In this document: positions 14,201-37,846 of the stretch, in pieces
How positions within the stretch are numbered: the first letter of the stretch is position 1
Layout: each line of letters begins with the position of its first letter
Origin: Hyphochytrium catenoides
Lineage: Eukaryota; Protista; Hyphochytriomycota
Length of the DNA: 38,123 nt
Direction of reading: 5' to 3'
Assembly (NCBI GenBank): GCA_900088475.1
Contig: FLMG01003580.1
Coordinates: 1 to 38,123 of the forward strand
Made by a program: the position numbers and the translations under genes
The notes under the pieces: model-generated
Database searches by the model: none
Seen by the model: the letters and a program-made list of their open reading frames with translations, nothing else
Told to the model about the DNA's origin: nothing

Positions 14201-17200
14201 TCCACCGTGCTTTTGTTTCGGAAGCTCTTAGTAGATTCATCTGAACGAGTGAGGCTCTTTGCCATTCAAGGCTTGTGTGCTTTATTAACCAGAAGAGCTA
14301 GCGTGACCAAGGAAGCGGTAAGACAGACTCAAGTCCGGTTGGGATGGTCACAATAGCTCATTCCGTGTTCACCACCATGATTACTACCAAGTAGGAAAGA
14401 GGAAGTTTGCAAAGCGTGACTGGGTACGAGCTTAGAGAGAGGCTGGGTGTTCCAACGTATACAATTACGGCTAGAATCTCGCGTCAGGCTGTAGGTTTTG
14501 GGACTGTTTGAGAGGAGAAAGGGCCAGTCAGGTGCCTTACAGGCTTAAGGATGATAGAACGAGTCTCGATGCGAGCCAAACCCTATATTTGAATTGCTGC
14601 CTTGTGACTAACATCTTGTTGTCTTTTTAGGATACCTTATGCTCCTGCTTGGTCACGACCTTCTCTTTCCCCTTACCCCTTCGTATTACGGCCTACTCCC
14701 GCCTAGGGAAGTCCTTCTCAGAGAAAGATGGCTGCAATTCTAGTAGGTCTCTGTTATCAGCAGAATCTCTGTTCCTCTTGGAGTCGGCGTTGAAGAGGCG
14801 TTTGCTGAGATACTTCTTGCCTCGTTGCGCAGGTAGGTCTTACGAGTGAGATGGAGGAGATGGGAAAGCAGAACAGCTTAGATGTAACGATTTTTTTATG
14901 TCATTCGGCAGAGGAGGACCAGGCCAGTGCAGGCAAGCGGTCGCAGACTGCTGGGCCTAGGTTGGAGCCGGGATATGCTTTCGCGGTAAGCCAAAGTAGT
15001 ATCTTGGTTGGGGTGAAATTCAAGGTCTGATTTGAGAAATCCAAGACCATCAATAGTACGAGATCGGGAAGGAAGATAGAGAGTACTTAAAAAGATTGCG
15101 CTTTCAAGAGCAGGGCCAGCACTTTCCTAATCCTTGCTGACGCTTCCTCTTGTTAAGATTGACCGTTGCTACGATCGTCTGGGTTCAGAGAACGTTTTAA
15201 AGGAAGACATCTCGGGGCTTCTGGGCTGTGTGATGGTATTAGAGCGTTACTGTCATCTCTCCCTTGGTGAAAGCTCGGTCTGTCTGTCGAGAGAGCTGCA
15301 ATCATATGGCTGGCTTGGACTCGAAGCATTTTTTGCCCTGTTAAGGCATATTGTTGAGCCAGGCTGGCTGTTTCAGGCACTTACCAGGGATGCCAGGTAT
15401 GGATCTTGCACTTCAGTTTCTGCGATAGATTGAAGTCCAGTATGCGACCCTGATATAAGTAAAAGACACGAAGTGAAAGGTACTGAGAACGTACGGATAT
15501 GTAGAAAGAAAGGGTAACACTGGGGTAACAAAACCGGCCTTTTGCATCGACAGATAGCTGCAATTGATCAGTTGCGCCTCAACGCTGACTAGCTTTTATA
15601 TTCCTAGAAACTTATTACCGGAAAGGTTCGATCCCTTTCGTAACCTACTGAAGATGCTCCTCCACTGGATATCAGATGGACAGAATGAAGATCGCGCTGG
15701 AGTCTATGAGGACCAATACAAATTGCTTATGCGGTAAAAGTCCATCATCTCCCTCTCTCAATCCATCACAGAGCCTCACTCATCAACTGCGGCTTTCAGA
15801 ACTTTTATTGATGACCACATTACTATAGTGGGAGATACAGAAGCTCTTAAACAGCAGCTTCTACAGCTCTACTGCGCCGTCACCATTATTGCGACTGCGT
15901 TTTCTTCACCCTCAGCTCTTCCTCCGCTTGGAATGAGTTCAGACCAACCTATTAGTCTTTCGGTGCTTGTGACTGAGAAGATGACGGAATTTTTCTCTCA
16001 CGCCGAGCTCGAGACGAAGCATTCAGTAGACGAGCCCACACCTGTGACGCAAGAATTTTTGCTTCACCTCTTCGGTGTGTCGGAGAGTCTAAAGCACCAT
16101 CGTCTCTCGGTCAACTCTAAGGTCGGCGGAGAAAGAAACACGACGTTGTCTTCACGGCCCTCGGATATCCAAGAGGTTTTCCACCTCTACCGTCGTTGCC
16201 TCTTGCCGGAAGGTGATCTCCAGGGATTGATAATAACTCCCAACAATATCACAGTACCCAGAAGAATGCTTTCCTCAGACAGCCCATCCTGGGGTGTGCA
16301 GCTTCTCTCCCGCTTAAAAGGGGATGAGGTGCGGAGGAAGGGGACCGATCTATTGTTATCAACCTGCTTTGACCTCCACGCAGAGCTAGTACAATACATA
16401 GAGACAGCTGTGGAGCAAGATTTGGTAACACCACGAGACCTCGAGAATGTGCTGAAGGTAATGCTCGTCATCCTGTACCTACCGTCTCAAGCTGAACAAG
16501 TCTCAAACCTCAATCTCAACTCTCTAATGGCCTCTCTCGCTCAAGATGGTCAACAAAGGGTTATTGTTCGGGCCTTCTTGTCCATTTACCTGCAAGTCGA
16601 TTTGTTTGGCTCCATTTCAGTGACACGTAGGTCTTAGCTCACTGACTATGTTTCACTCCTACGCTGGCGCGCTCGTCTAGGCCGTGACTCCACCCCAGAA
16701 GGAGGCCGAAGAGCCAGACGAAGAAAATGGAGCTACGTTTTTCAAGGTCGCCCTCGTTCTCTCCAAACGTTTGCGGCACATGATAGACGAAGGGATACCG
16801 GCCAATGTACTAATGGCATACCTGCGCCTCATCGAAAGAACATTAGAGCGAGGAGATTCCAAGAACGCGCACGCTTGGGATGTCCTAGGGAGGATTGCAG
16901 ACGAATTTTTCGCCATTTTGACTGCCCATACCATCGATCACTCGACCATATTCAGGATGATGCTGAAGAGGGTTATGGACCCTTTGCAGATACCACCGCT
17001 GAAGGAGGATAGGAGCAATGAAGGAAGCAAAGACGGCGGACAGGAGGCCCATGGCAACAACTTTAGGCAAGATGAAGATAAAGTAGGTGAACGAGCGAGG
17101 GTAGAGACTGTCTGCAAACGAGTATGCATGATGTTGGAGGGCCTAAGCACCTTTGAGACCGGAAGGACACTGGACGTAGATGAAGAGAGTGGTAAAGAGA

Positions 17201-22481: not shown

Positions 22482-23082
22482 GATACCGTTTTAGTTGTCC
22501 AACTGAGCTATCCCTTCCCTCACGCGAACCAGTTCTACTCATCAGGGGCAGCTCCATACAATGTTCTATCGTTATGATCACATGTTCCTTTCCTTGACTA
22601 AGAGGTAGCCGTGCTTCTCTGTTACCTACTGCTACGAAGCAGGAAAATATGTAGTTGACCCTAGCTCTTGACTAAGAAGTAAAAGTATCTGCGAAGAGAA
22701 GGGAAGAGACGGAGCTGATCATCCCGATTCTTCCCCCTCTTCAGCATTCAGTTGCAGGGGGAATTCAATCCACTGAAGTGATAATTGGGCATGGATCTGC
22801 TAGTGCTCGTACACAGTCTAGGAGAAAAGTCCGTAGTAGTTCAACGAAGGCGGCTGGGCCAACAACAAACATGATGTTGTCGGCTTACAAAGAGGAGAAG
22901 GCGACAGAGGTAGACAAGCTATCAGTCTACCAGCACAAAGCCGATTAGTCCCTTCTTCCTCTTCTTCTGTCTCATCATCACATTCACTTCTGTTTTTTCC
23001 TACAACTAGTAACACCGAGTATATGTTCTCCGACCAACAACCAACACCTACCGCCGGACAAAGCCATCTCCTCCCGTTAACC

Positions 23083-23808
23083 ATGGTCCTCACAGCACGG
23101 ATAGGACGCACAGCCATAGTGGCAGGACTGATGCTGAGCAGCTTGTCCTCTTCTATCGCTCTGGCCTCGCTTGCTACCTCGACAGCCACCGCTGCTGGTG
23201 ATGTTGCCTCTGTGGAGTCTGTCAGCGATCAGATGAGTATGTACGAGGATGAATCTCCTTTTCTGTCAATCAAGTCGGACTTCACGCCCGGCCCAGCAGC
23301 TGCATGGCGGATACTGTTATCCTCGAAACCACTTCTACCATCATCGTCGTCTTCCTCTGATGGTATCGTCGGCGGCTTAGGCCAGCAACAACAAGATCAC
23401 CAGGTGGCGCTGCTCGACGAACAAAACGATGAGCAGCTTGGCGGCAGCCGCAAGCAGATGGAGAGACCGGTAAACCTTATTGCCACCGACTTCCCAAGGG
23501 AACAATCTCCTCCTTCTGAGGAGAAGCCTCACGTTCGGCGTCTTCTGCGATCTCAACCACAAAGGAAAGTGGACTGTTCTCGCAATGGCCAAATCCAGTA
23601 TTGTGAAGAGACCATGGGGTATTTGTCAGCAGGCATTGTCGTGAAAGGGCCTGCTTATAGCCCACCAGGCACGAGATTTTGTCTCCGCAGCGATTCCCAC
23701 CACTATGCTATCAACTATCAAGCATCCTACCGAGTCACCTGCTCCAGTGGATCTCAGGGAACTATCAACTGTTGCACCGCAAAATTCACAATGCCTTACT
23801 CGCGTTGA
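23083..23808 (+). CDS. Secreted cysteine-rich prepropeptide, paralog A (intronless; ORF also open from 23023)
   Basis: The ATG lies in the same TAAYCATGG context as paralogs B and C. Layout: signal-like N-terminus (MVLTARIGRTAIVAGLMLSSLSSSIALASLA), acidic/Ser-rich prodomain with FTPGPAA, junction VRRLLRSQPQRKVDC, C-terminal C-x8-C-x25-C-x19-C-x9-CC. Confidence 0.8.
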   Translation: MVLTARIGRTAIVAGLMLSSLSSSIALASLATSTATAAGDVASVESVSDQMSMYEDESPFLSIKSDFTPGPAAAWRILLSSKPLLPSSSSSSDGIVGGLGQQQQDHQVALLDEQNDEQLGGSRKQMERPVNLIATDFPREQSPPSEEKPHVRRLLRSQPQRKVDCSRNGQIQYCEETMGYLSAGIVVKGPAYSPPGTRFCLRSDSHHYAINYQASYRVTCSSGSQGTINCCTAKFTMPYSR

Positions 23809-24034
23809 GGTTCTCGAGGGTGTACGAACCTTCATGACAAGAAGGAAACGAGTGGAGCTGGCGGCAGCGATAGGTGCAGTCCCTAGAGCTTGTATAGGAA
23901 GAACGGTAGAGTAGTCCAACACATGAGGTCAGGATAGCGCTGGATCAGAGATGAATAGTTAGGTCTGCCGCAGGCTCAATAAGGTCATAGATGTGCTGCT
24001 CTCCTGAGACAGCGCATCCAGCCGACAATAACTT

Positions 24035-24625
24035 CCAGCAGTACGTAGAACCTCCACACACTCCGCCTTCTCGACGGACCCCATTGACCCACAAACAAGC
24101 CCTTGCCCGAAGCAACCGATAGCCCAGCAAGGATCAATAAATAAAAATGATATGACGTCCATAGCGAAGAGCAGACGCGACTCTGTTCATCATGAGCGAA
24201 AGAAGGACAAAGTCCTTTCATTCCTTTGGGCCCAAAATAGCAGCTGCTTTCCCAGTGCAGTCTAACCTCTTTCTCTCCGTCTGGAGAGCTTTCGTCCACG
24301 TGCCAGCGCCCGTTAACCGAGGCACTGGTGGAAGGGTGAGCGCTCGGAAGAAGCAAGGATCACAGGCTGCTTCTTCCACTGGGCCAATTGCTCCACCCGC
24401 CCTGCACCAGAGTACTGGCAGTTAGGATACCAAGACAACTTAGAGCTCTTTCTATAGAAGCATATCAAAGAGGCGATGGGTACTACGAAGTACACTTAAG
24501 GAAAAGGAGCAGAAGTTATCGCCCGACACCTTATCCTTTCCTTTCTTATTTGGCGGTCTCCTTCATACTTTGACGCTTAAACCTTGCCTCCTGTGCCTTT
24601 TGGATGTACCATTCTGCAAGCTTCT
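24035..24625. repeat. Diverged ~600-700 bp duplicated segment, copy 1 (partner at ~35062-35745)
   Basis: Collinear shared blocks include TTCTCGACGGACCCCA, ACGTCCATAGCGAAG, AACCTCTTyCTCTCCGTCT, AAGCAAGGATCAC, TTCTTCCACTG and TTTGGCGGTCTCCT. Confidence 0.85.
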
Positions 24626-24805
24626 GGAGGCAGGACATTTGATACCTTCTTTATTGCAAGGCTTAAGAGTGATGCTATCTCTCTCTCTGTCCCTTTCGGA
24701 CAAACAGCGCCTAAAAGAGATGTCCATATACCTTCCAGCTCCTCAAAGTTCTCTCTCTTCCCAATTCTTGAAAGATACGCGAGAGACAGAGGCGATGGAA
24801 GAGGA

Positions 24806-27800
24806 CTATAGCAGCTCCGGATCACCGAACTCAGCAGCGAAGCGTCCCAACGCCCAGACAGGGAACACATTCCTATAGGAGGTGTAGGTAATCCCGCTGG
24901 TGCGGTTGAACACTCCGCTCACACTCTCCTGAGACCAATCTCCAGTCTTCTCCTGCCTCTGAATAAGAAACCTTGCACCCTTTTTCAGCACCTCTTTCTC
25001 TTCCTCTGTCTTCCCCCATCCACCAGCAAGAAGGCCTAGAAGTGCCCAAGAGGTCTGGACAACTTGGCTTCCCTCCCTGTTGTTCTCGGTGTACTTCTTG
25101 TCAAGGCAAGACAAGAAGCTTTCTCCCCAGCCTCCATCCTCTCTCTGCTTGGAGGCAAGGAAAGCGCAGGCTTTAGAGATAGCACGGGAGCTTTCCCTTT
25201 GCTCTCCGGCAGCCTTTAGGCCCTCGATACCGAACCAGGTGCCGTAAGTGAAGCAGCAGCCCCAGCTGCCGTACCAGCTCCCATCCTTTCGCTGAATGCT
25301 TTGGATGAACTTCTGCCCGTTCTTGATCGCCCTCATTATCTCCTTTTGGCGATGCTCAGGGAATTGCTTTTGGAAGCTCTAAGAGTATTGAAAGAGGGAG
25401 AGAGAGAGAGAGAGAAAGGGCAGAGATAACGGCAAAAGGTGAGATCTGCGACGGATGGAGAAGTGGATGACCACAATGGAGCAGCACAATAAAGAGGAAA
25501 ATTAGAGAGAAAGAAAGAAAGAGAACAGACTTACCACCAACGCAGTCAAGACTGCAGAGGTGCACTCCACATAAGAGTAGTCGATCATGATATCGCCAAA
25601 CACCTCGGAAGGGTTCAGCAGCTCATACCAACGCCATCCTCGCGTGAGTTCGTAGGTTGCCCATCCGCCGTCATCGTTCTGGAAGGAAAGCAGTAGATGC
25701 ACAGAGTCGAAGAGACGCTCGGCGTTGATCTTGTTGGAGATCTTAGGATTCTCCTAGAGAAGGGTGGAAAGGAGGTCAGTCTTAGGTGTAGAGAGCCGCG
25801 TTAGAGACCGCTGAGGGGGATATGCACGGCTGCCAATATTCTAACATCCGACGGGAAGGGATTTAGAGAGGAAAGAGACTGGATCTCAAGGATCTTGAGC
25901 GCTCTATGCCTTCTATCTCCTCCTTTCTCTCCCTTCCTGTCTGGTTTCTTGGCTCTTTGTTTCCCTTACCATTTGCAATAGCACAGCCTTGAGTCCCTCG
26001 GCAGTGCAGTCAGAGATGGGCCAGCCGTGGGCATTGGTGCTGAAAGGCCACCCGCCCTTTGAGATGTGCCTGAACGAGAGAAGAATGAACAGACAGAATA
26101 TCCTTAGAGACTTAGCAATGATTAGGAGCAACAATATATGCTACTCTTTAGGGATTCGGGCAAGATAAGGGAGGAGGAGGGTCCACACCATCGTACCGGA
26201 AATACTTCTCCCTGTCGGGTACATCTTCTCTGATCTGCGTAACATCCACAAAGTCGTGGGCCCTTTGTAGACACTGAGTGAACTCCTCCTGCAATCCCGT
26301 CTCATAGATAGCTTGGATGGCAAAAGCGGTGTCCCAAAGCTACGCCAAGAGAGAGAAAGATGTGAGGATGACGCAGCAGAGTAATCGGGCCGAAGCAAGA
26401 AGCCAAGGAACGGTCTAGCCTTAAGTAAGAGGCTCCGTTCGAAGTTAAAGAAAGGGCAACCCCAGCTTGCAGTGGCCTATCACACTTCCCCCACGGCTCT
26501 GGCTTTGATAAGACCCCACTTCTTCTCTGCCTGTCCGCTTACCTGGCTCCCATTGTACCCTTGCATCTTGACTCCGTCCTCGGCCATCCAAATGTAGTCC
26601 TCGAGCCTCTTGACATGCTTCTTCACCGCCTCTCCTTCAGGGTTTTCCGCCCACACGGCCACGAGGTTTAGCATCTTATTGACAGGCCCAATGTCCACAT
26701 AGTTCGTCTGTTCATCTTCGGCATGGATGTAGTCTATGGCAAAGCGAAGCCCAGCAGAACGTAGGAGGGAGACAGAAGAGGAAAAAGGGGAGCGTTCGTA
26801 GATCGCTAGGATCTCATTAAGAAGACGCATGGGCAGAGAGAGAGAAGCGTAAGCATCGATGTCGCTCACTGGAGCAGTCCTGAAAGTTTGCCAATTGATC
26901 TCCTCATACTTCTCAACGTAAAGTTCTTCTCTTAGTGCCGTAGTCAGTGGACAGAGCGGACGGGTCACTCTCTTTCCATAGATGTAAGACATAGGAAGAT
27001 AGACCATGCGACAGTGACACCAGAGACGGCCAGGATGGAAAGGGAACCAGTACGGAAGCATCCACAGCTCGGGAGGAATAGAGTTTATCCCTCGCCAGTC
27101 ATAAACACCGAGGATCGCCAGCCAGAATTTGGCCCAGGAGGCGGTAGAACCTGCTCCACCATGCTCCTTGATAAAGAGCCGAGCCGTGACGATGTACTCT
27201 TCTTCACTGCTCTCCCCCAACAAGCGCAGAGCCACATAGTTCAGCACCGAGCCAAACATGGTACTTGCACCCTCGATGTGAGTGCCCCAGCCGCCGTCTT
27301 CTTGCTGATGATTGCGCAGATAAGCCACCATTCCGCGCTTTTTGAGCTCGGAGATCTCAACCCCGCATACGAAGCAGGCAATGACGAAACCTGGCAGGAG
27401 GAACATTGGACCTCCGTAGTCTCCAGCCCAGAATCCATCGTCCGTCTGCAGCGTCTGGTAGTAAGCAACACCTTTCCTCGCTGCATCTAGTGCTGTCTTA
27501 GGTCGCGGAGCTTCGGCATTTGGCGCTTCGAAGATGCTCCGAGACTGAGCCCACGTCCTGAAGAGCTTATCACCAGCGTTAGGATTCCTGGAAGGATCAA
27601 AAGTAGAGAAAAGAGAGCGCATGGTTTCCATGTCGAGCAGTCCTTCTTCTCCCTCCGTCCATATCTGTCGTCCAACAGGCTCTCCAGTGAGATTTGGAAG
27701 CTTTTTTCCTGAGAAGGACTTCTCGGTAACTTCGTGAGAACGCTTTCCAATGGCAGGATGGCCGACAACAGAGGGCACAGCGGCAGGTCTGGAGCTCCAT

Positions 27801-28027
27801 TTGGCCAGTCTTGTCGTTGTTTCTCTTGGACCTCCAGGAGAAGAGCGCGGTTCCAGATTCATGAGAATGAGAGGACAAAGCAGAGCGAGAAGGATGGTGG
27901 AGATGAGGATGGCGAGGAAGTGATCGGCGCAAAGGACCGAGAGATAAGCAAATAGATCCTGCAGCATTGTCCGGCAGGTCTCCGAGAAAACGATGAAAGA
28001 GACGGAAAGGAAGATGGCAGCTGCCAT
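24806..28027 (-). CDS. CAS1: Oxidosqualene cyclase, cycloartenol-synthase type, ~839 aa; exons 28027-26543, 26339-26197, 26069-25970, 25753-25535, 25378-24806
   Basis: Motifs present: [38 protein letters not shown]|[15 protein letters not shown] (catalytic DCTAE), QW repeats ([29 protein letters not shown]). Residues equivalent to Arabidopsis CAS1 Y410/H477/I481 are the cycloartenol-type set; lanosterol synthases have T and V at 410 and 481. Confidence 0.95.
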
Positions 28028-28309
28028 TGCTCCTTCTCAATCAGTTGGCAACAGGGCCAATGTAATCTTCTCCTCGCCTTTCTTCCGTCTTGATCTTTGT
28101 CTTTTCTTCTCTAGGTAATACCTTAGATCTCGATGTCTGGGGCCACGAAGATTTGGCAATGAAGAGTCTCAAAGACTGGCAATGAAAATCTTCGGTGACG
28201 AAGAGAATGTTGGGCTGCAGGCTCTAGAGTCTCTGTCCAAAAAAAGTCATTGAAAGTGAAAGCTTGGTCCCAAGTCCGAGCTTTTAGAGGCATCCCAAAG
28301 CAAGAATAG

Positions 28310-28486
28310 GGAGACAGAAAGATAGAAGAGAAAGGGCAGAATAGGAGGAGGGCGAGAGAGAGAAAGAGAGAGAGAACGAGAAAGAGAGAGAGAACGAAAG
28401 GAGAGAGAGAGAGAAAGACAGAGACACAAGAGAGACAAAGAGAGACACGCGAGAGACAGAGAGAGAGAGAGAGAGAGAGACAGAGA

Positions 28487-28530
<44 letters not shown>
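28310..28530. repeat. (GA)n microsatellite upstream of the oxidosqualene cyclase gene
   Basis: Directly visible; CT-rich on the OSC sense strand. Confidence 0.9.
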
Positions 28531-28532
<2 letters not shown>

Positions 28533-29777
28533 CAGAGGAGACTCCTATTGATTACTGAACGAGAAGAGGAACAGATCTGATATTGATAACCAAGGTAGGT
28601 GGTTGTTGATTTGTTGATACAACTGTATCGTGGGAGCTGCAATGAGGAGTTGTACATGTGAACTACTACAACGCACAACTGTTTTATGCACTGTCATGGC
28701 TTCGACTCAAGCTCTCTCGCGTTGTTCAGAGCAGACTCTTTATAATATTACGCTGTGTTCTACTGTAGGCAGAACTCATCATCATCAGGCCTCAGAGTAG
28801 TCAAGAGTCATGACGGGGCCAAGGTCCCAAGGCGGCGGGAGAAAACGTGTCAACAACAAGCGCCTTCTTCTGTACTACGCTGTCTGAGTGCATCTGGTGC
28901 TGCTGCTGGCCATTAGCGACTGTCGGCTCTGCCAGTAGGGAACATATGGGAGGAAAGGAGGAAAAGGATAGGCAAGACGGGCTCATACGTTCCCGTACCG
29001 GACCAGTAGACTGGAAGAGTTGCTACAGGGCTGACGTCCTTGCTTAGCAGACACTTTATTGAAGTGAAGGACTATGCAGCAGAGGGGATTACTTGGTCGA
29101 GGAGTGACTGAGAAAGCCTGCCAAGACACGACCGTGGCCTGCCATCAGCTGGTGTCAAGCTCAGGGGGCGCATTGGTTCCTTTTCTGTTCTTGGCTGGTT
29201 GAGATAGGAAAGCTGCGCTCACCCTCTCACGAATTTCCCCAATACTAGTTGGCTATAGCAGAATCTAGGAGTAATATATACTGGCTGGCCATTGCGGAGA
29301 GAGAAGGGGAGCAGGCATGGTAATCCTGATTCTTCTTCTCCTCTTACTGCATCCCCTACTGTAGTTGCAAAAGATTGTTAGTCGTAGCAGTAGGAGGAGG
29401 GTGAAACATAATGCAACACGCTATTATAAAGCTGATAAACCGTGGACCTGAGAAGTAAGAAGTATCATGGCTCTCGAGTGCTAGGGCTCCTACCATTCTA
29501 GTAGAGAGGAAGGCAGCACGAAGGCTGCACCACCAGAGATGATGCTGTCGGCTTGCAGGAGGAGGAGGAGGCGAGAGTAGTAGTGGTTATGCTATGACTG
29601 ATCAACAAAAAAGAACGGTAGTCGCTCCTTCCTCGTCTATTCTTCTTCTAATTCCCCACCATCGTCATACTCACTTCTCTTTTTTCCACCATCGGCAACA
29701 ACGAGCGTTCTCCCATCAACAACCAACACCTGACCGACTGGCGCAAAGCAAAGCTCTACAACCTCCTCCAGCTAACC

Positions 29778-30443
29778 ATGGTCGTTTCAACACTGACAAT
29801 AGTCCTCCGCACAGCCGTATTGGCAGGAATGATGCTATTTAGCTTGTCCCCTTCTTCCGCTCTGCCCGAGAGGACCTCGGCTGGTGTTGTCGCCTTTGCG
29901 GAGTCGGCCAGTGATGAGATGATGCGTATATACCAGGACGATTCTGACTCTCTGACAATAGAATCGGAGTTCACCCCCGGCCCAGCAGCAGAACGGATGC
30001 TTTCCTCCTCCTCAGAACCACTTCTACCATCGTCGTCCTCCTCCTCTGACGGTACGGTAGGAGGCTTGAGCCAGGATTATGGTCGGGAACGGGCGTTGAG
30101 GAACCAACAAGATTATAATGAGCAGCTTGAGGAGGGCAGCGGCGGCCACAATCAGAGGGAGGGAACGGAGGAGGACCTAAGTTTCGCGCTTCAAAAGGAG
30201 CAAACTCTTCCTCCTCAACTATCTAGGAGCCGTCTTCGGCGACTTCAAGCAGGAAGGAAAGTGGACTGTTCTCTTGGTGGCCAAATCAAGTATTGTCGTA
30301 GATATGGTCTCGTGGGCGTGAGATATCATCAGAAGAATTATTGTTACATGCCTCCTAATTACCTTTTCCCTACTAACGTTCTCGCATAGTTCACTGTCAC
30401 CTGCTCAAGCGAGTCCCAGGGTGTTGTCAACTGTTGCAATTAG
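29778..30443 (+). pseudogene. Secreted cysteine-rich prepropeptide, paralog B, with in-frame TAG at 30387-30389 (nonsense allele, readthrough or sequencing error)
   Basis: The prepro region is nearly identical to paralog C. After the TAG the frame continues FTVTCSSESQGVVNCCN followed by TAG TAG (30441-30446), completing C-x8-C-x15-C-x19-C-x9-CC. Confidence 0.75.
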
Positions 30444-31974
30444 TAGAATCTGTGGGGTCTCGATGATGTACTTCTACGAACCTCCATGGCAGAAAGGAAG
30501 AGAATAGAATAGGCAGCAGCGGCAGCTGAAGTGCTTGTAGTATATACCTACCTCTATAGAAAAAAAAATCACAAAGATTGCCGTGTACGTTCCTTGCTCT
30601 TTGAATCGACTGATTTTATCACCTCTGGGAGATGTCTCCCAGTCCTCTCGCGGCTGACCGGATGGAGGAAAGCAAGAGCTCTCACGAAAGCCAGTCACCG
30701 CGTCTGACGCGCCCTTTGCTGTGTAGAGTACTGTCCCCTTCTTCCAGGCGCCGCCTTCCTCCTCTCCTTATCCTCCCTCGACGGCGGCTGATGATGATGA
30801 AGGGGAGCCTGGCGCCGCCGAGTGTCACTCCAGGTTGGCCAAACGCCTTCGTCTTGGCTCCTCCCTCCACCTCGATCAGGGGAGCCTATCCCTGCCTGGC
30901 GCCGCCATGGGCGACGTACAACTAGGGGCTACCGGCCCTTCGTCCTGCGGTTGCTGCTCTCGTCGCCGATGCTGCTGCTTCCCGCACTTTTGTCATTGAC
31001 GTCCTGGAACTCTTTCTCGCTTGCGCAGGAGCTCTTCCACGCCCTAGTCGAGTCTCAAGAAACGGCGGCTCCCAACGAAACTTTCCGTGCAGAATTGCGG
31101 CCAATCCGCGGTGAGCTTCTTGCTTTTCGTAAGCACCTCCACAGCTCAGGCCTCCTCCTCGCGCTCCTCCGTGATGGTCTCTTCACGCCCGCAAAACATA
31201 GTTCTATGACCCTGCACTTCTATTCTACTCCTTTCATGAGTAATAGTAATATAGGAAAAGGAAAAGTCAACAATAAATGCTGCAGTACAGGTACTTCTTC
31301 CTTAGTACTTTTCGGAGTAGGGAGGCAGTCTACTGCTCGCGAATGCTGGGTCCCTTCTGTTAACAGGTCTCAAGTCTCGAGTTCCTGGACCGAGGACGAG
31401 GAAGCATCTTTCTTGCGGGAAACTGTATACAAATACAAGCGATACATCAAAGCGATCATAGCATAGCAGGGTCGTTCTACGATCATCCTCTGAAGAAAGA
31501 AGGAAGGCCGTTTGAAAGCCCGTCCTATGGCTGGTCTGATACCGTTTTGTTATGCAACTGAACCCTTTCCATTCCCTCCCTCGAACTACTCAACAAGGAC
31601 AGCTCCCTGATAACATATCCTTTTGCATCGACTAAGAAATAGTTCTATCTCTGCAGCCTATCACGGCGCGGGCACACGATAGTGACTGATAAGGTCTTTG
31701 GCTGTCGTTAGGATAGCCATCCGAAAGGACTCGGTGAGGGCTGTAAAAAAAATGTTCCTGAAGAGCATTAAGAAAGGTCCAACCCATCATCAGTGATCCA
31801 CACTGGCTTCCTGGAGTGACCGACCCCATGTGTGACAGAGGCGCATGTGTCACTTGCCTGTGTCTCGCTAGTTGGAAGAGGAACGATGGGCTCACCCCCC
31901 TCGAGAACTCTTCGACATCATCATCTGGCCATAGGAGATTGTAGGACGAATAACCACCGGTTGGCTGCTGCAGA

Positions 31975-32006
<32 letters not shown>

Positions 32007-32510
32007 CAGAGAGAGANNNNNNNNNNNNNNNNNNNNNNNNNNNNNNNNNNNNNNNNNNNNNNNNNAGTGGTGAGCAAAGTCATGATCATCCTGATTCTAG
32101 TCCTCTTCCTAGTCGCAGAAGGATTCTACAGGAGGAAGAGGAGGAGGAGGGTGGAACATAATGCAGCAGACTACGAGCTATGAACCTGATAAACCTTGGA
32201 TCTGAAAAATAAATATTGTGCCTCTACTACTGCTACGTAGTGCTCGTACGTACACATTCTAGCAGCGACGAAGGTAGCACGAAGAACGGGCTAACAAAGA
32301 TGATGCTATCGGCTTGCAGGAAGAGGAAAGGGGACAGAAGTAATGCTGCTATCGATTGACCGACACAAGCCCTCCCGTCTTCTTTTGCTTCTTCTGTCCC
32401 ATCTTCACCATGCTCACTTCCCATTTTGCCCCCACCACCAGCAACAACAAGCGTTTGTCCCATCGAGTATTAATTAGCGTTGCCCCGTCTACGGCCTCCT
32501 CCCGCTAATC

Positions 32511-33179
32511 ATGGTCGTCTCAACGCCGACGATAGTACGCACAGCCGTATTGGCAGGAATGATGCTATTTAGCTTGTCCACTCCTTCCGCTTTGGTCGAG
32601 AGTACCACCGCTGGTGCCGTCGCCTCACCGGAGTCCGCCAGTGATGAGATGCGTATATATCCGGACGGCTCTGACTCTCTGACAATAGAATCGGAGTTCA
32701 CGCCCGGCCCGGCAGCAGAACGGATGCTTTCCTCCTCCTCAGAACCACTTCTACCATCGTCGTTGTCATTCTCCTCTGACGGTATGGTAGGAAATTTGAG
32801 CCCATATGGTCGGCAACTGGCGATGACGAATGAACAAGATTATGAGGATGAGCAGCTGGAGGGCAGCAGCAGCCACAATCAGAGGGAGCGAACGGAGGAT
32901 GACCTAACTTCCGCGCTTGGAAAGGAGCAAACTCTTCCTCCTCAACTACCCCGGAGCCGTCTTCGGCGACTTCAAGCAGGAAGGAAAGTGGACTGTTCTC
33001 TTGAGGGCAAAGCGCGCTTTTGTAAAGGAAATGGCTACGATGGTGTAAGGAATGACAGGTATTGTGTCGTACCTCCTTACTCCAAACTCCCTGGGATCTA
33101 CCTGGAAGCAAAGTTCCAAGTCACCTGTCAAAGTGGATCCCGGGGTACTATCACCTGTTGCCATACAGGTGCACTTTGA
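32511..33179 (+). CDS. Secreted cysteine-rich prepropeptide, paralog C (222 aa, intronless)
   Basis: Layout: signal-like MVVSTPTIVRTAVLAGMMLFSLSTPSA, acidic prodomain, junction RSRLRRLQAGRKVDC, C-terminal C-x8-C-x13-C-x20-C-x9-CC. Confidence 0.85.
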   Translation: MVVSTPTIVRTAVLAGMMLFSLSTPSALVESTTAGAVASPESASDEMRIYPDGSDSLTIESEFTPGPAAERMLSSSSEPLLPSSLSFSSDGMVGNLSPYGRQLAMTNEQDYEDEQLEGSSSHNQRERTEDDLTSALGKEQTLPPQLPRSRLRRLQAGRKVDCSLEGKARFCKGNGYDGVRNDRYCVVPPYSKLPGIYLEAKFQVTCQSGSRGTITCCHTGAL

Positions 33180-35061
33180 GGTCTCTGATGGTGTACGATT
33201 CTCCATGACAGGAAGGAAGAGACTACTAGAGTAGGCAGCAGCGGTGGCTGAAGCACCATTTAGCTAGTCGTTCTTTCCTATGTTTTTCTACTATAATCAC
33301 ACTCCGCCAAGTAAAAAAATATTAGAAATGGACCGTGACGACGGCCGTCTTGAAGTCAAGAAGGCGATGGATCAGTGATGATAAAGATGAGATGGCAGAG
33401 TTCGTTGAAGGCTCTTCCTTCTCGTAGTGCAAATAGCAGAATGAGATTCATGAAGATTATGCGCTCGAGCAATGCTCAATAGACTAATGATGCTCAGGGA
33501 CTGTAGAGCCCATGTATGTAAAGCTTATGAAGTTGATGTGCAAGAGAGAAACACTCTAAGAAAGGGAGATATCAGAGAGTGTTAGAAAATGACTGAACGG
33601 TCACCAAGGGATCCATCGTCTCAGACAAGAGAATCGGCAAACAAATTGGTGGCCAGAAGAAGGAAAGGGAAGAAGTAATGAAAGTCGGAAAGAGATAGTT
33701 CATGAAGCAAGAAGAGAACAAATTTCTAGGAGAAAAAATAGTGAAAGGAGAAAGTAGGACAAAGAATCAAGAGAAGGATATTCCTTGCCATAGAAACCCA
33801 AAAGAACAAGAGATCTCAACAGATAGCTCTGCTGCAGCAGGCTCACGAATGAACGAGTTGAGAGGACAGTTGGCCACTAGTAGAGGCATGTCAGCAGATG
33901 ACGGAGGCCAAGAAGTGCTGGATTGCTGATGTCTGTGTGACAAATTTCTAACCTGTGAAGACCTCTGGACCTTCTTGAGCCTATCCTCCTCCTCCAGTTT
34001 TCCATGTAGGGCCGGCCAACACTCGTAATGGAAAAGTAGACGAGTAAAGCCTAGCAGCTCTTTTTTGAAAGCGCCATTTTCTTCTGTGCACTCTCTCTTT
34101 GACCTGTAGGTGGTTTTCATGAGCCAACAACTTCCAGACTTGTTTTGACTCTTGTTGCTTAACCTTTCTTTTCATTCCTAAGAAGAGTAACTTCTTCATC
34201 GTCTTCTCCATGGTTCTTTCTCTTGTTATGTTGTTTGTTGTCTTCTTCTGCTATTGCACCACCGATGAGTTCCATGATTATGATCAAAAAGATAGATGAG
34301 TGAGTGGTGGTGGTCAACAATCGAGTAGTGGAAGTTGGATAGCAACACCACCTGAAGAAGAATCTTGTCATCATACGTACTTCTCTCGTCGTCTTCATTA
34401 GGTGAGCCTTAATAACCAGTCGTCTATTCGCCGATCTTGCTATCCATCATCCAGCAAACGGCGCGGCCACTGTGGGTGGTGACTGCAAGGCACCACTCTA
34501 CCCCTGACTTACCTATCACCCATCACCGATCGAAGGCTATGCGTGCCAACTATTCTACTGGTCCTGCTGCGGTAACTTCTCCTTACCTACGCTGATCTAC
34601 ATGTATCCGTCATCATCATAAGACTGAGAAGCGGCTTCTCAAAGCTGTGAATGGAACGCAGAGAGGCATCGCATGGAGCACAGGCTGGCCGTTCTCCTTC
34701 TGTTATGAAGGGCGCCAGTCCTATTATGCTGGAGGGCTTGTAAGGGCTCCGATGCTGCTGTGTGGTGTTCATTCAAACAACACGGTCATAACTGAGAAGA
34801 AGTGATCAGGTTCTTCTCTCCTTGACGTGCTTCTTCTCATTCTCCTTCTTGTGGTGGAGTCACCGAGGGCCGCTATGCAATCTTCAGATGTAAATCTATA
34901 AGGCAAGGCGACTGCCGCTGTGAGGTACAGAAGGCTATGCATTGTGACTTCTCAACCTTCAGAGCCAACCATCAGCGATACGAAGGTAGAGAGCGCGCGC
35001 TGTTGACTCATGGTCATAGATGGACTGTGAGACAGTGTAGCATGCAGTGAGCAACAGCCTT

Positions 35062-35950: not shown

Positions 35951-37846
35951 CTAAGAGTGCCTCCCCATTTGGAGATCTCCTCTTTGTGTCGTCTATGTTG
36001 TTGTCTGTCCTCTTAAGAGGGTACTGCTGCTTACCTCTAATTCCCTTTGTCTTCGGGTCTCTGCCCCAGTCTTCTTCTCAAGTTTCCTCTTCTTTTGCTT
36101 AGATTCTGCCTTGAACTTGGCATATTGCAGCGACAGCTGAGCTTGATCTACCACTTGAGCTTGCAACGTAGAGCTCTTGCGCTTGTGCTGGACAGCCTGC
36201 GGAGGAATTGCCTGAAAAAGAATGATTTGAAGAGGAGAGAGAGGAAGTGAGAGAGAGAGCATTAGGCATGGAGAATAGGGATGGAGAAGGGTTGGAGAAT
36301 GAGAAAGAGTGGGAAGAGTCTCTGCATATAGTCTTGCGGACGCTAGCCCTTACCTTCAGGACGCTAAGGGAGCCTTGTCCCTCTTCCTTTGGTGCTTTTT
36401 TAGTCTTCTGTCGCTTCTTCAGCCACTCATTGAAAGCTTCAGCACTCCTTTGTCTCTTCTTCGCCTCCTCTCTCTTGCTTTCTTCTTCCAGTGCCCGCTG
36501 CAGCTGCTGCTTCATCTTTGCCTTGTGGTCTTGAAGGTAGCACCACTCCTCATAGGTGATCTATAACCCAGACACCGAGATAGGAAGAGAGACAAAAAGT
36601 GAGAGTATGCAGCTGGTATACAGAGAGAGCATGGGAGAAGGGGCCCAAGCCTGGCACTTGGCTTGTTCAAGAGAAAGACTGAGGTAAGAGAAAGTACGGG
36701 AGAAGACGAACGAGAGCGAGCTAAAAACATGCCTTTACCTTGTCGTCACCCGGCAGTCTGTCAACAGGCACAATTTTCGCTTCCTCCCTGCCTCCCGTGA
36801 CTGGTTTTCTTCCCTTGATGTGCCAAGGCCTATCTCCTTGCTGAAGAGACCGTAGGCGCTCTTGAAGATCTGGATCGCTGCTCCCAAGTGGAGGCAAAGA
36901 AAGAAAAAAGAGAGAGAGGGAGAGGGAGGGAGAGAGAAAAAGAGAGAGAGAGAGAGATGGAAGACGGAATAAATCGGTGTGTGCGAGACAGAGGAGATCA
37001 CTTGTGAGAGCTATCTATCAGAAGACGGATCCAAAGAAGGCTGGGATTTGGGAACATAAGGCAAGGAAGCAGAACAGCCAGCGACGCAGCTTCTTGCCCC
37101 TCTGACGAGAGCCTTTCGTCTCCTTGTCTCTCTTTCACATAAACACGCACACATGTTGCTGTCTACCTCTTTCCTTCGCAAACTCTCGCTTTCTTTCTCT
37201 CTCTGTTTGTGTCTCTCTCTTCTCTCTCTCTCTCTCTCTCTCTCTCGTTTCCTTCCTTTCTCACCTATGAACCAGATCCAGCATCATCCGCTTCTCTTTC
37301 TCTTCCAGCTGTCGAAAAGACCAACATATTACGTCGTCACTCATAGACTCTGAGCGGCGAAGATGGCTGAGGAAGGCCTCACTGCTCCAAGAAGAGCAGG
37401 AAAGGCGGCTCTGCTTGCCATTGTTTGGCCGTAGACCGCAAGACGACAGAGAGAGAGAGAAAGAGAGAGAGGGAGAGAAAAGAGAGAGAGAGACAGAGAG
37501 AGAGAGACAGAGAGAGACAGAGAGAGAGAGACAGAGAGAGAGACAGAGAGACCGAGAGACAGAGAGAGAGACGGAGAGACAGAGAGAGAGAGAGAGAGAG
37601 AGAATAAGCTTCTTGATAAGCTCAGGAGAGAGATGATAAAAGGGCTCTTTCATTTTACCTCGTCCGTGACCTCATTCTCCTGGAATGGACGCTGCCGCCC
37701 GAAGGAGAGGGCGACAGCGGAGGAGTCACTCTTATACTTGTCAGGGTTATACGCAGGAGCGGCTCGTGCTTCTGGGGCCTTCCTCTCTTTGCCTTCGGCT
37801 GTTGGGGCGTCTCTAATCGTCCCCTTGGGTCCCATGCCCGTTGTCT
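35951..37846 (-). CDS. Partial multi-exon coiled-coil protein, CCDC34/CCDC181-like (5' end unresolved, probably upstream or beyond the window)
   Basis: GT-AG exons translate to DPDLQERLRSLQQGDRPW..., ITYEEWCYLQDHKAKMKQQLQRALEEESKREEAKKRQRSAEAFNEWLKKRQK... and AQLSLQYAKFKAESKQKKRKLEKK. Repeated (Y/F)xEW motifs in a charged coiled coil are typical of these families. Terminal exons are uncertain. Confidence 0.5.
37445..37602. repeat. (GA)n/(GAGAC)-type intronic microsatellite
   Basis: Directly visible; CT-rich on the sense strand of the minus-strand coiled-coil gene. Confidence 0.9.

Follow-up and report, generated by a model that had tools for sequence, protein, structure and literature searches.

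A tandem family of three genes for candidate secreted prepro-proteins with a six-cysteine domain in Hyphochytrium catenoides

In vertebrate alpha- and beta-defensins an anionic propiece balances a cationic three-disulfide peptide that ends in CC, and the precursors of cone-snail toxins and Euplotes pheromones join a conserved signal and pro region to a hypervariable mature region with a fixed cysteine frame. Among the stramenopiles, the RXL motif has been proposed as a general cleavage signal of the secreted precursors of diatoms, where the silaffin precursor Sil1p runs from a signal through an acidic domain to a basic part and RRIL or RRNL is the proposed endopeptidase signal (PMC4557024). 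In oomycetes, the RXLR motif is cut after its Leu before secretion (PMC11754927). Here we describe three tandemly duplicated genes on a contig of Hyphochytrium catenoides, a free-living saprotrophic 'pseudofungus' that is sister to the oomycetes. The stretch analysed comprises positions 1 to 38,123 of this contig (FLMG01003580.1, assembly GCA_900088475.1), and we refer to it as the window. The genes form a real and new family, restricted to this lineage, and their layout is the same as that of fungal effectors with a Kex2-processed pro-domain (10.1101/2020.05.27.120113).

A first-pass annotation, made from the letters of the window, had proposed three paralogs at 23083-23808 (copy 1), 29778-30443 (copy 2) and 32511-33179 (copy 3). 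Listing and translation of the open reading frames (ORFs) recovered all three at these coordinates, each on the + strand and each apparently intronless. Copies 1 and 3 are complete ORFs of 241 and 222 amino acids (aa) respectively, whilst copy 2 has the layout of the other two and an in-frame TAG in the assembly. The proteins can be aligned over their full length, with 73% identity between copies 2 and 3 (copy 2 being taken up to its stop) and 47-48% between copy 1 and either of the others, and the lengths of the coding sequences differ by multiples of three. ORFs on the antisense strand over the copies are not common to them, and the + strand frame was therefore taken as the coding frame. DNA alignment revealed that the duplicated unit exceeds the ORF, extending ~300-380 bp upstream and ~60-110 bp downstream. 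The upstream non-coding stretch common to the three copies (+ strand, 32233-32510 before copy 3, with counterparts at ~22796-23082 and ~29477-29777) is probably the promoter and 5′ untranslated region (UTR). The shared 3′ flank is short and lies on the + strand at 33180-33300, with counterparts at ~23809-23912 and ~30444-30549.

The start context, ACCATGG or ATCATGG, is common to the copies. In copy 1 a further ATG lies in frame 60 bases ahead of the conserved start (window 23023-23082); the corresponding DNA of the other two copies resembles it but is out of frame, and the conserved ATG was therefore taken as the start. All three copies retain a short upstream motif (GATGATGCTGTCGGCTTGCAGG and its neighbours), at 22852-22880, 29526-29566 and 32287-32327, some 230-250 bp from the start codon, which may be a shared promoter or 5′ UTR element. 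A conserved intron in the 5′ UTR was considered and rejected, as copy 2 has no AG at the candidate acceptor.

Each of the three proteins contains a single N-terminal hydrophobic segment, with a maximum Kyte-Doolittle mean over 19 residues of 1.6-1.9, and elsewhere this mean never exceeds 0.6. The N-termini of all three copies appear signal-like, spanning aa 1-28 in copy 1 and aa 1-27 in copy 3, and small residues at -3/-1 provide plausible signal cleavage sites between ALA and S in copy 1 and between SSA and L in copy 2. An acidic region of 121-123 aa follows, reaching aa 151 in copy 1 (16-18% Ser, net charge -10 to -13; for the pro region, isoelectric point (pI) 4.3-4.6 and charge -8 to -12), in which the motifs FTPGPAA, PLLPSS and SSDG.VG.L are invariant. 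RRL is invariant in 3/3 copies at the acidic/basic boundary, and 4-7 residues on comes an equally invariant RKVDCS. All on the + strand, RRL occupies 23536-23544 in copy 1 (with RK at 23563-23568), 30237-30245 in copy 2 and 32964-32972 in copy 3. The junction of copy 3, RRLQAGRKVDCS (32964-32999, + strand), is the best-conserved stretch of the gene and holds the candidate processing site or sites.

The part C-terminal of RRL is basic (pI 9.0-9.6, charge of about +5 to +6) and contains six cysteines in a domain of 60-85 aa, encoded on the + strand at 23545-23805, 30246-30440 and 32973-33176 in copies 1, 2 and 3 respectively. None of the copies ends in a C-terminal hydrophobic tail of the kind found with a glycosylphosphatidylinositol (GPI) anchor. 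The cysteine frame is C-x8-C-x(25/15/13)-C-x(19/19/20)-C-x9-CC, and the domain ends in VTCxSxSxGxxxCC. The third Cys of copy 1 is placed ambiguously, since one alignment matches a PP motif and leaves this Cys off by eight residues, and another matches the cysteines. Thus the layout put forward in the first-pass annotation holds in its parts, namely a signal-like N-terminus, an acidic Ser/Glu-rich prodomain of ~120 aa, a basic RRL...RK junction and a small cationic domain that starts with KVDCS. The spacing and the domain end that it gave for the cysteines were reproduced too, except that the x19 of copy 2 counts the stop TAG as a residue.

The combination of a signal-like segment, opposite charges and an invariant basic junction before the first Cys points to a prepro-protein that is cut at this junction. 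From these features we infer secretion, cleavage at RRL/RK, three disulfides and a role of the resulting peptide outside the cell, a reading that we hold tentatively and at slightly less than even confidence. An N-terminal signal peptide would direct entry into the endoplasmic reticulum, and the disordered acidic Ser/Glu-rich region of ~120 aa would act as a propiece whose charge offsets that of the cationic C-terminal domain. A secretory-pathway endoprotease would then cut the invariant junction after RRL (the RxL type of diatoms and oomycetes), after the dibasic RR/RK, or at both. Outside the cell, the freed domain of 60-85 aa, carrying three disulfides, would serve as a fast-evolving peptide with binding or antimicrobial activity as the organism competes with other microbes. 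For a saprotroph faced with competitors on pollen and detritus, the most economical guess is that the peptide is antimicrobial or otherwise directed against such competitors. The first-pass annotation had also considered an effector used against hosts; this is weakened, as a host-directed role is unlikely in a free-living saprotroph. As candidate enzymes, the genome encodes many proteases of the aspartic and S8 types. Copies 2 and 3 read R-L-R-R, which fits the furin-type R-x-K/R-R, and RR and RK are invariant. We lean tentatively towards cleavage of the RxL type over a dibasic convertase.

The RXL precursors of diatoms (silaffin Sil1p, cingulins and silacidins) come from stramenopiles, as does the present family, and their R-x-L at the acidic/basic boundary is matched here. 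However, silaffins consist of Lys/Ser-rich repeats with no cysteines and function in silica formation, whereas the hyphochytrid has no silica wall, the cargo is a disulfide domain and there is no sequence similarity. The RXLR effectors of oomycetes belong to the sister lineage and share R-x-L cleavage, and copy 1 reads RLLR. In those effectors, however, only a short distance separates the motif from the signal peptide, EER often comes after it, and the cargo is helical and of the WY type, not Cys-rich. In the present family RRL lies at aa 152-156, RLLR is found in copy 1 only (copies 2 and 3 have RRLQ) and EER is absent behind the motif, which places these proteins outside the RXLR definition. 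The genome paper reports one RXLR candidate and 0 elicitins in H. catenoides (PMC5795050). A bolder proposal is that RRL represents an ancestral stramenopile RxL secretory processing signal, common to hyphochytrids, diatoms and oomycetes and later the source of the host-targeting motif, which here would free a hypervariable three-disulfide peptide of undescribed fold with an antimicrobial or pheromone role; taken as a whole, we consider this improbable.

Fungal effectors of the Kex2-processed type and antifungal proteins of the AFP/PAF type (PMC13525654) share with this family the pre-pro layout and a dibasic site before a small Cys-stabilised secreted domain. They differ in that the pro region here is much longer and there is no match in sequence or fold, and no kexin P-domain was detected in a six-frame search of the genome. 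The likeness to defensins that the first-pass annotation had drawn is weakened by both size and spacing. Defensin domains measure 30-45 aa and have short loops, whereas the loops in this family comprise 13-25 and 19-20 residues in 60-85 aa; the spacing is x8, x13-25, x19-20, x9 and x0, no Pfam match was obtained, and the copy 3 model, with a predicted local distance difference test score (pLDDT) of 70, has no fold match. The pattern of the cone-snail and Euplotes precursors was measured in this family too, but sequences and organisms are unrelated and the rise in synonymous divergence here may in part stem from gene conversion.

We searched for relatives and for the fold of the family, using copy 2 only as two pieces or with X at its stop. 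Searches of the genome with the whole protein, with a profile of the Cys domain (a check suggested in the first-pass annotation) and with a profile of the pro region found only the three members described here; a weak pro-region match on contig 79 (E 0.08) was attributed to low complexity. A word-indexed search of a collection of 5.8 billion protein clusters, carried out separately for the whole protein, the Cys domain and the pro region, found no relatives. No relative was found in metagenome contigs or by a language-model atlas and exact-product look-up, and there was no match among the PDB sequences. An exhaustive HMMER profile search against 1.84 billion representatives returned a single match with E 4e-4. 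This match is confined to profile positions 14-47, which take in the signal-like segment and the first part of the pro region, within a protein of 2363 aa, and was judged spurious. Pfam contained no family matching the Cys domains at E <= 10 and none matching the whole proteins at E <= 1, and elicitins, PcF-SCR, Kazal and other named Cys-rich secreted domains likewise gave no Pfam match.

AlphaFold2 modelled the domain of copy 3 with a pLDDT of 69.8, placing a short helix between cysteines one and two and beta hairpins after it. The model of the copy 1 domain was poor (pLDDT 44), and only the last hairpin (VTC and CC) recurs in both. Foldseek with the copy 3 model found no match in the PDB at E <= 0.001 (best E 1.3), a shape search of the atlas gave no usable match (template modelling score <= 0.47), and VIA-align against 48,161 chains gave no Z >= 2. 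At such model quality, blanks in fold searches would not amount to proof of a new fold. The family belongs to no named family, in keeping with the cysteine spacing not having been recognised when it was first noticed, and no known housekeeping or structural domain emerged from Pfam, the PDB sequences or the fold searches.

Divergence between the copies was estimated by the method of Nei and Gojobori as synonymous (dS) and nonsynonymous (dN) change. Between copies 2 and 3, the signal has dS 0.26 and dN 0.05 (dN/dS 0.2), the pro region dS 0.18 and dN 0.14 (dN/dS 0.81) and the Cys domain dS 0.61 and dN 0.55 (dN/dS 0.91). The junction, over 12 codons, has dS 0 and dN 0, all codons being identical without a single synonymous change. 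For copy 1 against copy 2 or 3, the whole gene has dS 0.70-0.77, dN 0.44-0.45 and dN/dS 0.57-0.65. DNA identity between copies 2 and 3 is 0.49-0.84 upstream, 0.77-0.98 in the signal and pro region, 0.58-0.66 in the Cys domain and 0.79 in the 3′ flank (first 52 aligned bases). The switch between these two copies is therefore abrupt, and the Cys domain has diverged further than the non-coding DNA that adjoins it. A mature region that changes faster than its surroundings is known from toxin, defence and pheromone precursors. Moreover, 6/6 cysteines are kept in every pair of copies, in which 39-52% of columns are identical (hypergeometric P 0.002-0.015). Their retention on a background of ~40-50% identity indicates a scaffold under constraint.

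In copy 2 the reading frame is interrupted at 30387-30389 by a TAG that falls between cysteines three and four, so that in the assembly this copy is not the open gene for which it had been taken. Past the TAG the frame stays in register, reads FTVTC...CC and continues to a terminal TAG TAG at 30441. The window was compared with the contigs of three public DNA runs of one study, X1 and X3 (one sample, S1, 2011) and X2 (2017), referred to as read sets; these Logan contigs retain a single variant per place. Position 30389 is C in X1 and X3 only, giving a sense codon, and G in X2 and in the window, giving the stop. The stop is thus polymorphic, being real in one read set and absent in another. As H. 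catenoides is diploid, with a frequency of single-nucleotide polymorphisms of ~0.0275 (PMC5795050), allelic differences are the simplest reading of the read-set variants. For the stop this would mean alleles of one diploid culture, the alternative being a difference between cultures; contigs that hold one variant per place do not separate the two. A role for TAG as a sense codon was rejected, given that copy 2 itself ends in TAG and the other read set has an ordinary sense codon at this position.

A closer inspection of the read sets revealed further variants in the Cys domains. In copy 3, the S1 runs differ from the window at ten bases in seven codons, of which six change the residue and one is silent. 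In copy 2 there are four base differences, 4/4 of which alter the meaning of the codon. The Cys domains of the read sets combined thus contain ten residue-changing codons and one silent codon, with no cysteine affected, compared with one or two differences in the first 150 codons of each copy (one residue in copy 3). This clustering is suggestive and not a test, for the base-level ratio is near neutral and the pattern is in part a whole-contig haplotype effect. Gene conversion from a paralog was rejected as the source of the copy 3 variants, whose residues match neither copy 1 nor copy 2 when compared by eye. Two further differences fall outside the Cys domains. At window 30064, the G of the assembly is A in 3/3 read sets, which turns codon 96 of copy 2 from Gly to Asp, and the assembled G may be an error or a minor allele. 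A cluster of seven base differences and one-base gaps at window 33309-33324, in the 3′ flank of copy 3, distinguishes read sets and is probably a small complex indel between haplotypes.

These variants bear on the possibility that the released peptides are mating or self-recognition pheromones. Identity would then reside in the variable loops, on the model of the S-locus cysteine-rich proteins in Brassica and of the prepro-pheromones known from the ciliate Euplotes. In copy 3, six residues of the 68-aa domain vary between the read sets, against one in the first 150 aa, with the cysteines all kept, and evidence of sexual reproduction has been reported for this diploid organism (PMC5795050). However, the genes are three tandem copies and not one multi-allelic locus, and no linked receptor or mating-type genes were seen in the window, where the neighbour is a sterol cyclase. 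Contigs that keep one variant per place also do not show these variants to be alleles within a culture. We regard a pheromone role as rather remote.

Several results weigh against the processing of these proteins to a secreted peptide. The kexin/furin P-domain (P_proprotein) was not found in a six-frame search of the genome, in which introns can hide this 86-aa domain. The fold models are of middling quality at best, with a pLDDT of 70 in copy 3 and of 44 in copy 1, one of the three copies has a stop in the assembled haplotype, and a search of public runs found no RNA run holding the stretch. Furthermore, synonymous divergence between copies 2 and 3 rises from 0.18 in the pro region to 0.61 in the Cys domain (14/89 versus 15/36 sites, Fisher p = 0.004). 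This rise is much smaller in comparisons with copy 1, and a contribution from gene conversion between the 5′ parts of copies 2 and 3 is therefore probable. The contrast between a conserved pro region and a variable mature region would then be partly the product of gene conversion and not of selection. Lastly, an overall dN/dS of 0.6-0.9 is also expected from relaxed constraint.

The lack of a kexin-type P-domain in the six-frame search also fits proteins that are secreted or wall-associated and remain uncleaved. The acidic Ser-rich region would then be a disordered spacer, possibly phosphorylated or glycosylated, and the Cys domain a small module of the cell surface or matrix with a binding or structural role. 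The front region is long (~120 aa), Ser-rich and equipped with invariant motifs of its own, and its conservation exceeds that of the Cys domain, an unusual trait in something that is no more than a propiece. On the other hand, the invariant RRL and RK right before the first Cys and the opposite charges are traits of processed precursors. The proteins have neither a GPI-type hydrophobic tail nor a second hydrophobic segment, and a match to a wall or adhesion domain was absent from Pfam. We therefore consider uncleaved proteins unlikely, if a serious alternative to the cleaved precursors that we prefer.

The dN/dS values of 0.6-0.9, the stop in the assembled copy 2, the lack of relatives in any collection searched and the failure to find an RNA run holding the stretch could instead mark a young orphan family that is drifting to loss, made up of real or recently real genes without current function in which fast change reflects relaxed constraint. 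Against this, the three collinear ORFs of 222-241 codons have been kept over dS ~0.7-1.0, two being open in the assembly and three in the other read set, although several stops per copy would be expected under neutrality by a rough estimate. Plain decay is also at odds with the retention of the cysteines, the junction, the VTC...CC end and the start context, and with length differences in multiples of three. Drift to loss thus appears quite improbable, and processing to a disulfide-stabilised extracellular peptide remains our preferred, if tentative, reading.

The window contains one assembly gap, at 32017-32065, which is intergenic and falls within a (GA)n/poly-G simple repeat. It comes after a (GA)n run, and loose contig ends carry poly-G and (AG)n before 32066; no contig bridging the gap was found among those of the three runs. 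The gap lies 446 bp upstream of the copy 3 ATG and to the left of the shared upstream stretch, and it touches no family member or coding sequence, the ORF that passes through it (31832-32161) being translated GA repeat. Consequently, nothing but the order of copies 2 and 3 and the 2.7 kb between them depends on scaffolding. Long (GA)n microsatellites are present at window 28303-28529 and 31975-32016, the second of which adjoins the gap. Loose ends at 30576 and 32130 were considered as a structural variant, which was rejected; the contigs of two runs continue there as contig 3251 (G000:C3251:27977-28305). As the window and this locus share no BLAST-detectable similarity, the run assemblies appear to have made word-level joins at 30576 and 32130.

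The space separating copies 1 and 2 holds an oxidosqualene/squalene cyclase gene with introns (window 24806-28027, - strand; SQHop_cyclase_N E 4e-46, SQHop_cyclase_C E 1e-40), which fits the sterol pathway reported for H. catenoides. An ORF at window 36099-36515 (- strand) has a below-threshold match to the CCDC34 coiled coil (E 1e-6, 28.6 bits against a cut-off of 35). Elsewhere in the genome there are three channelrhodopsin genes, two of them on one contig (G000:C2531:7223-8107 and 15707-16882) and the third at G000:C3799:6417-7183, and one of these ORFs matches the solved HcKCR2 with 450 bits over 194 residues. The genome paper likewise reports three rhodopsin genes, two of which are on one contig (PMC5795050).

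Taken together, these genes constitute a new, lineage-restricted example of a well-known layout. The lineage of H. catenoides is barely explored, and for the present the family is one of many orphan cysteine-rich families. Among ~15 billion predicted proteins its Cys domain has no relative, nor did the fold searches match it; if expressed, it would be a new small disulfide scaffold and a candidate antimicrobial peptide. Moreover, a secreted family with a conserved R-x-L junction so far from a parasitic lifestyle would help to date the RxL-type processing of oomycete RXLR effectors and diatom wall proteins.

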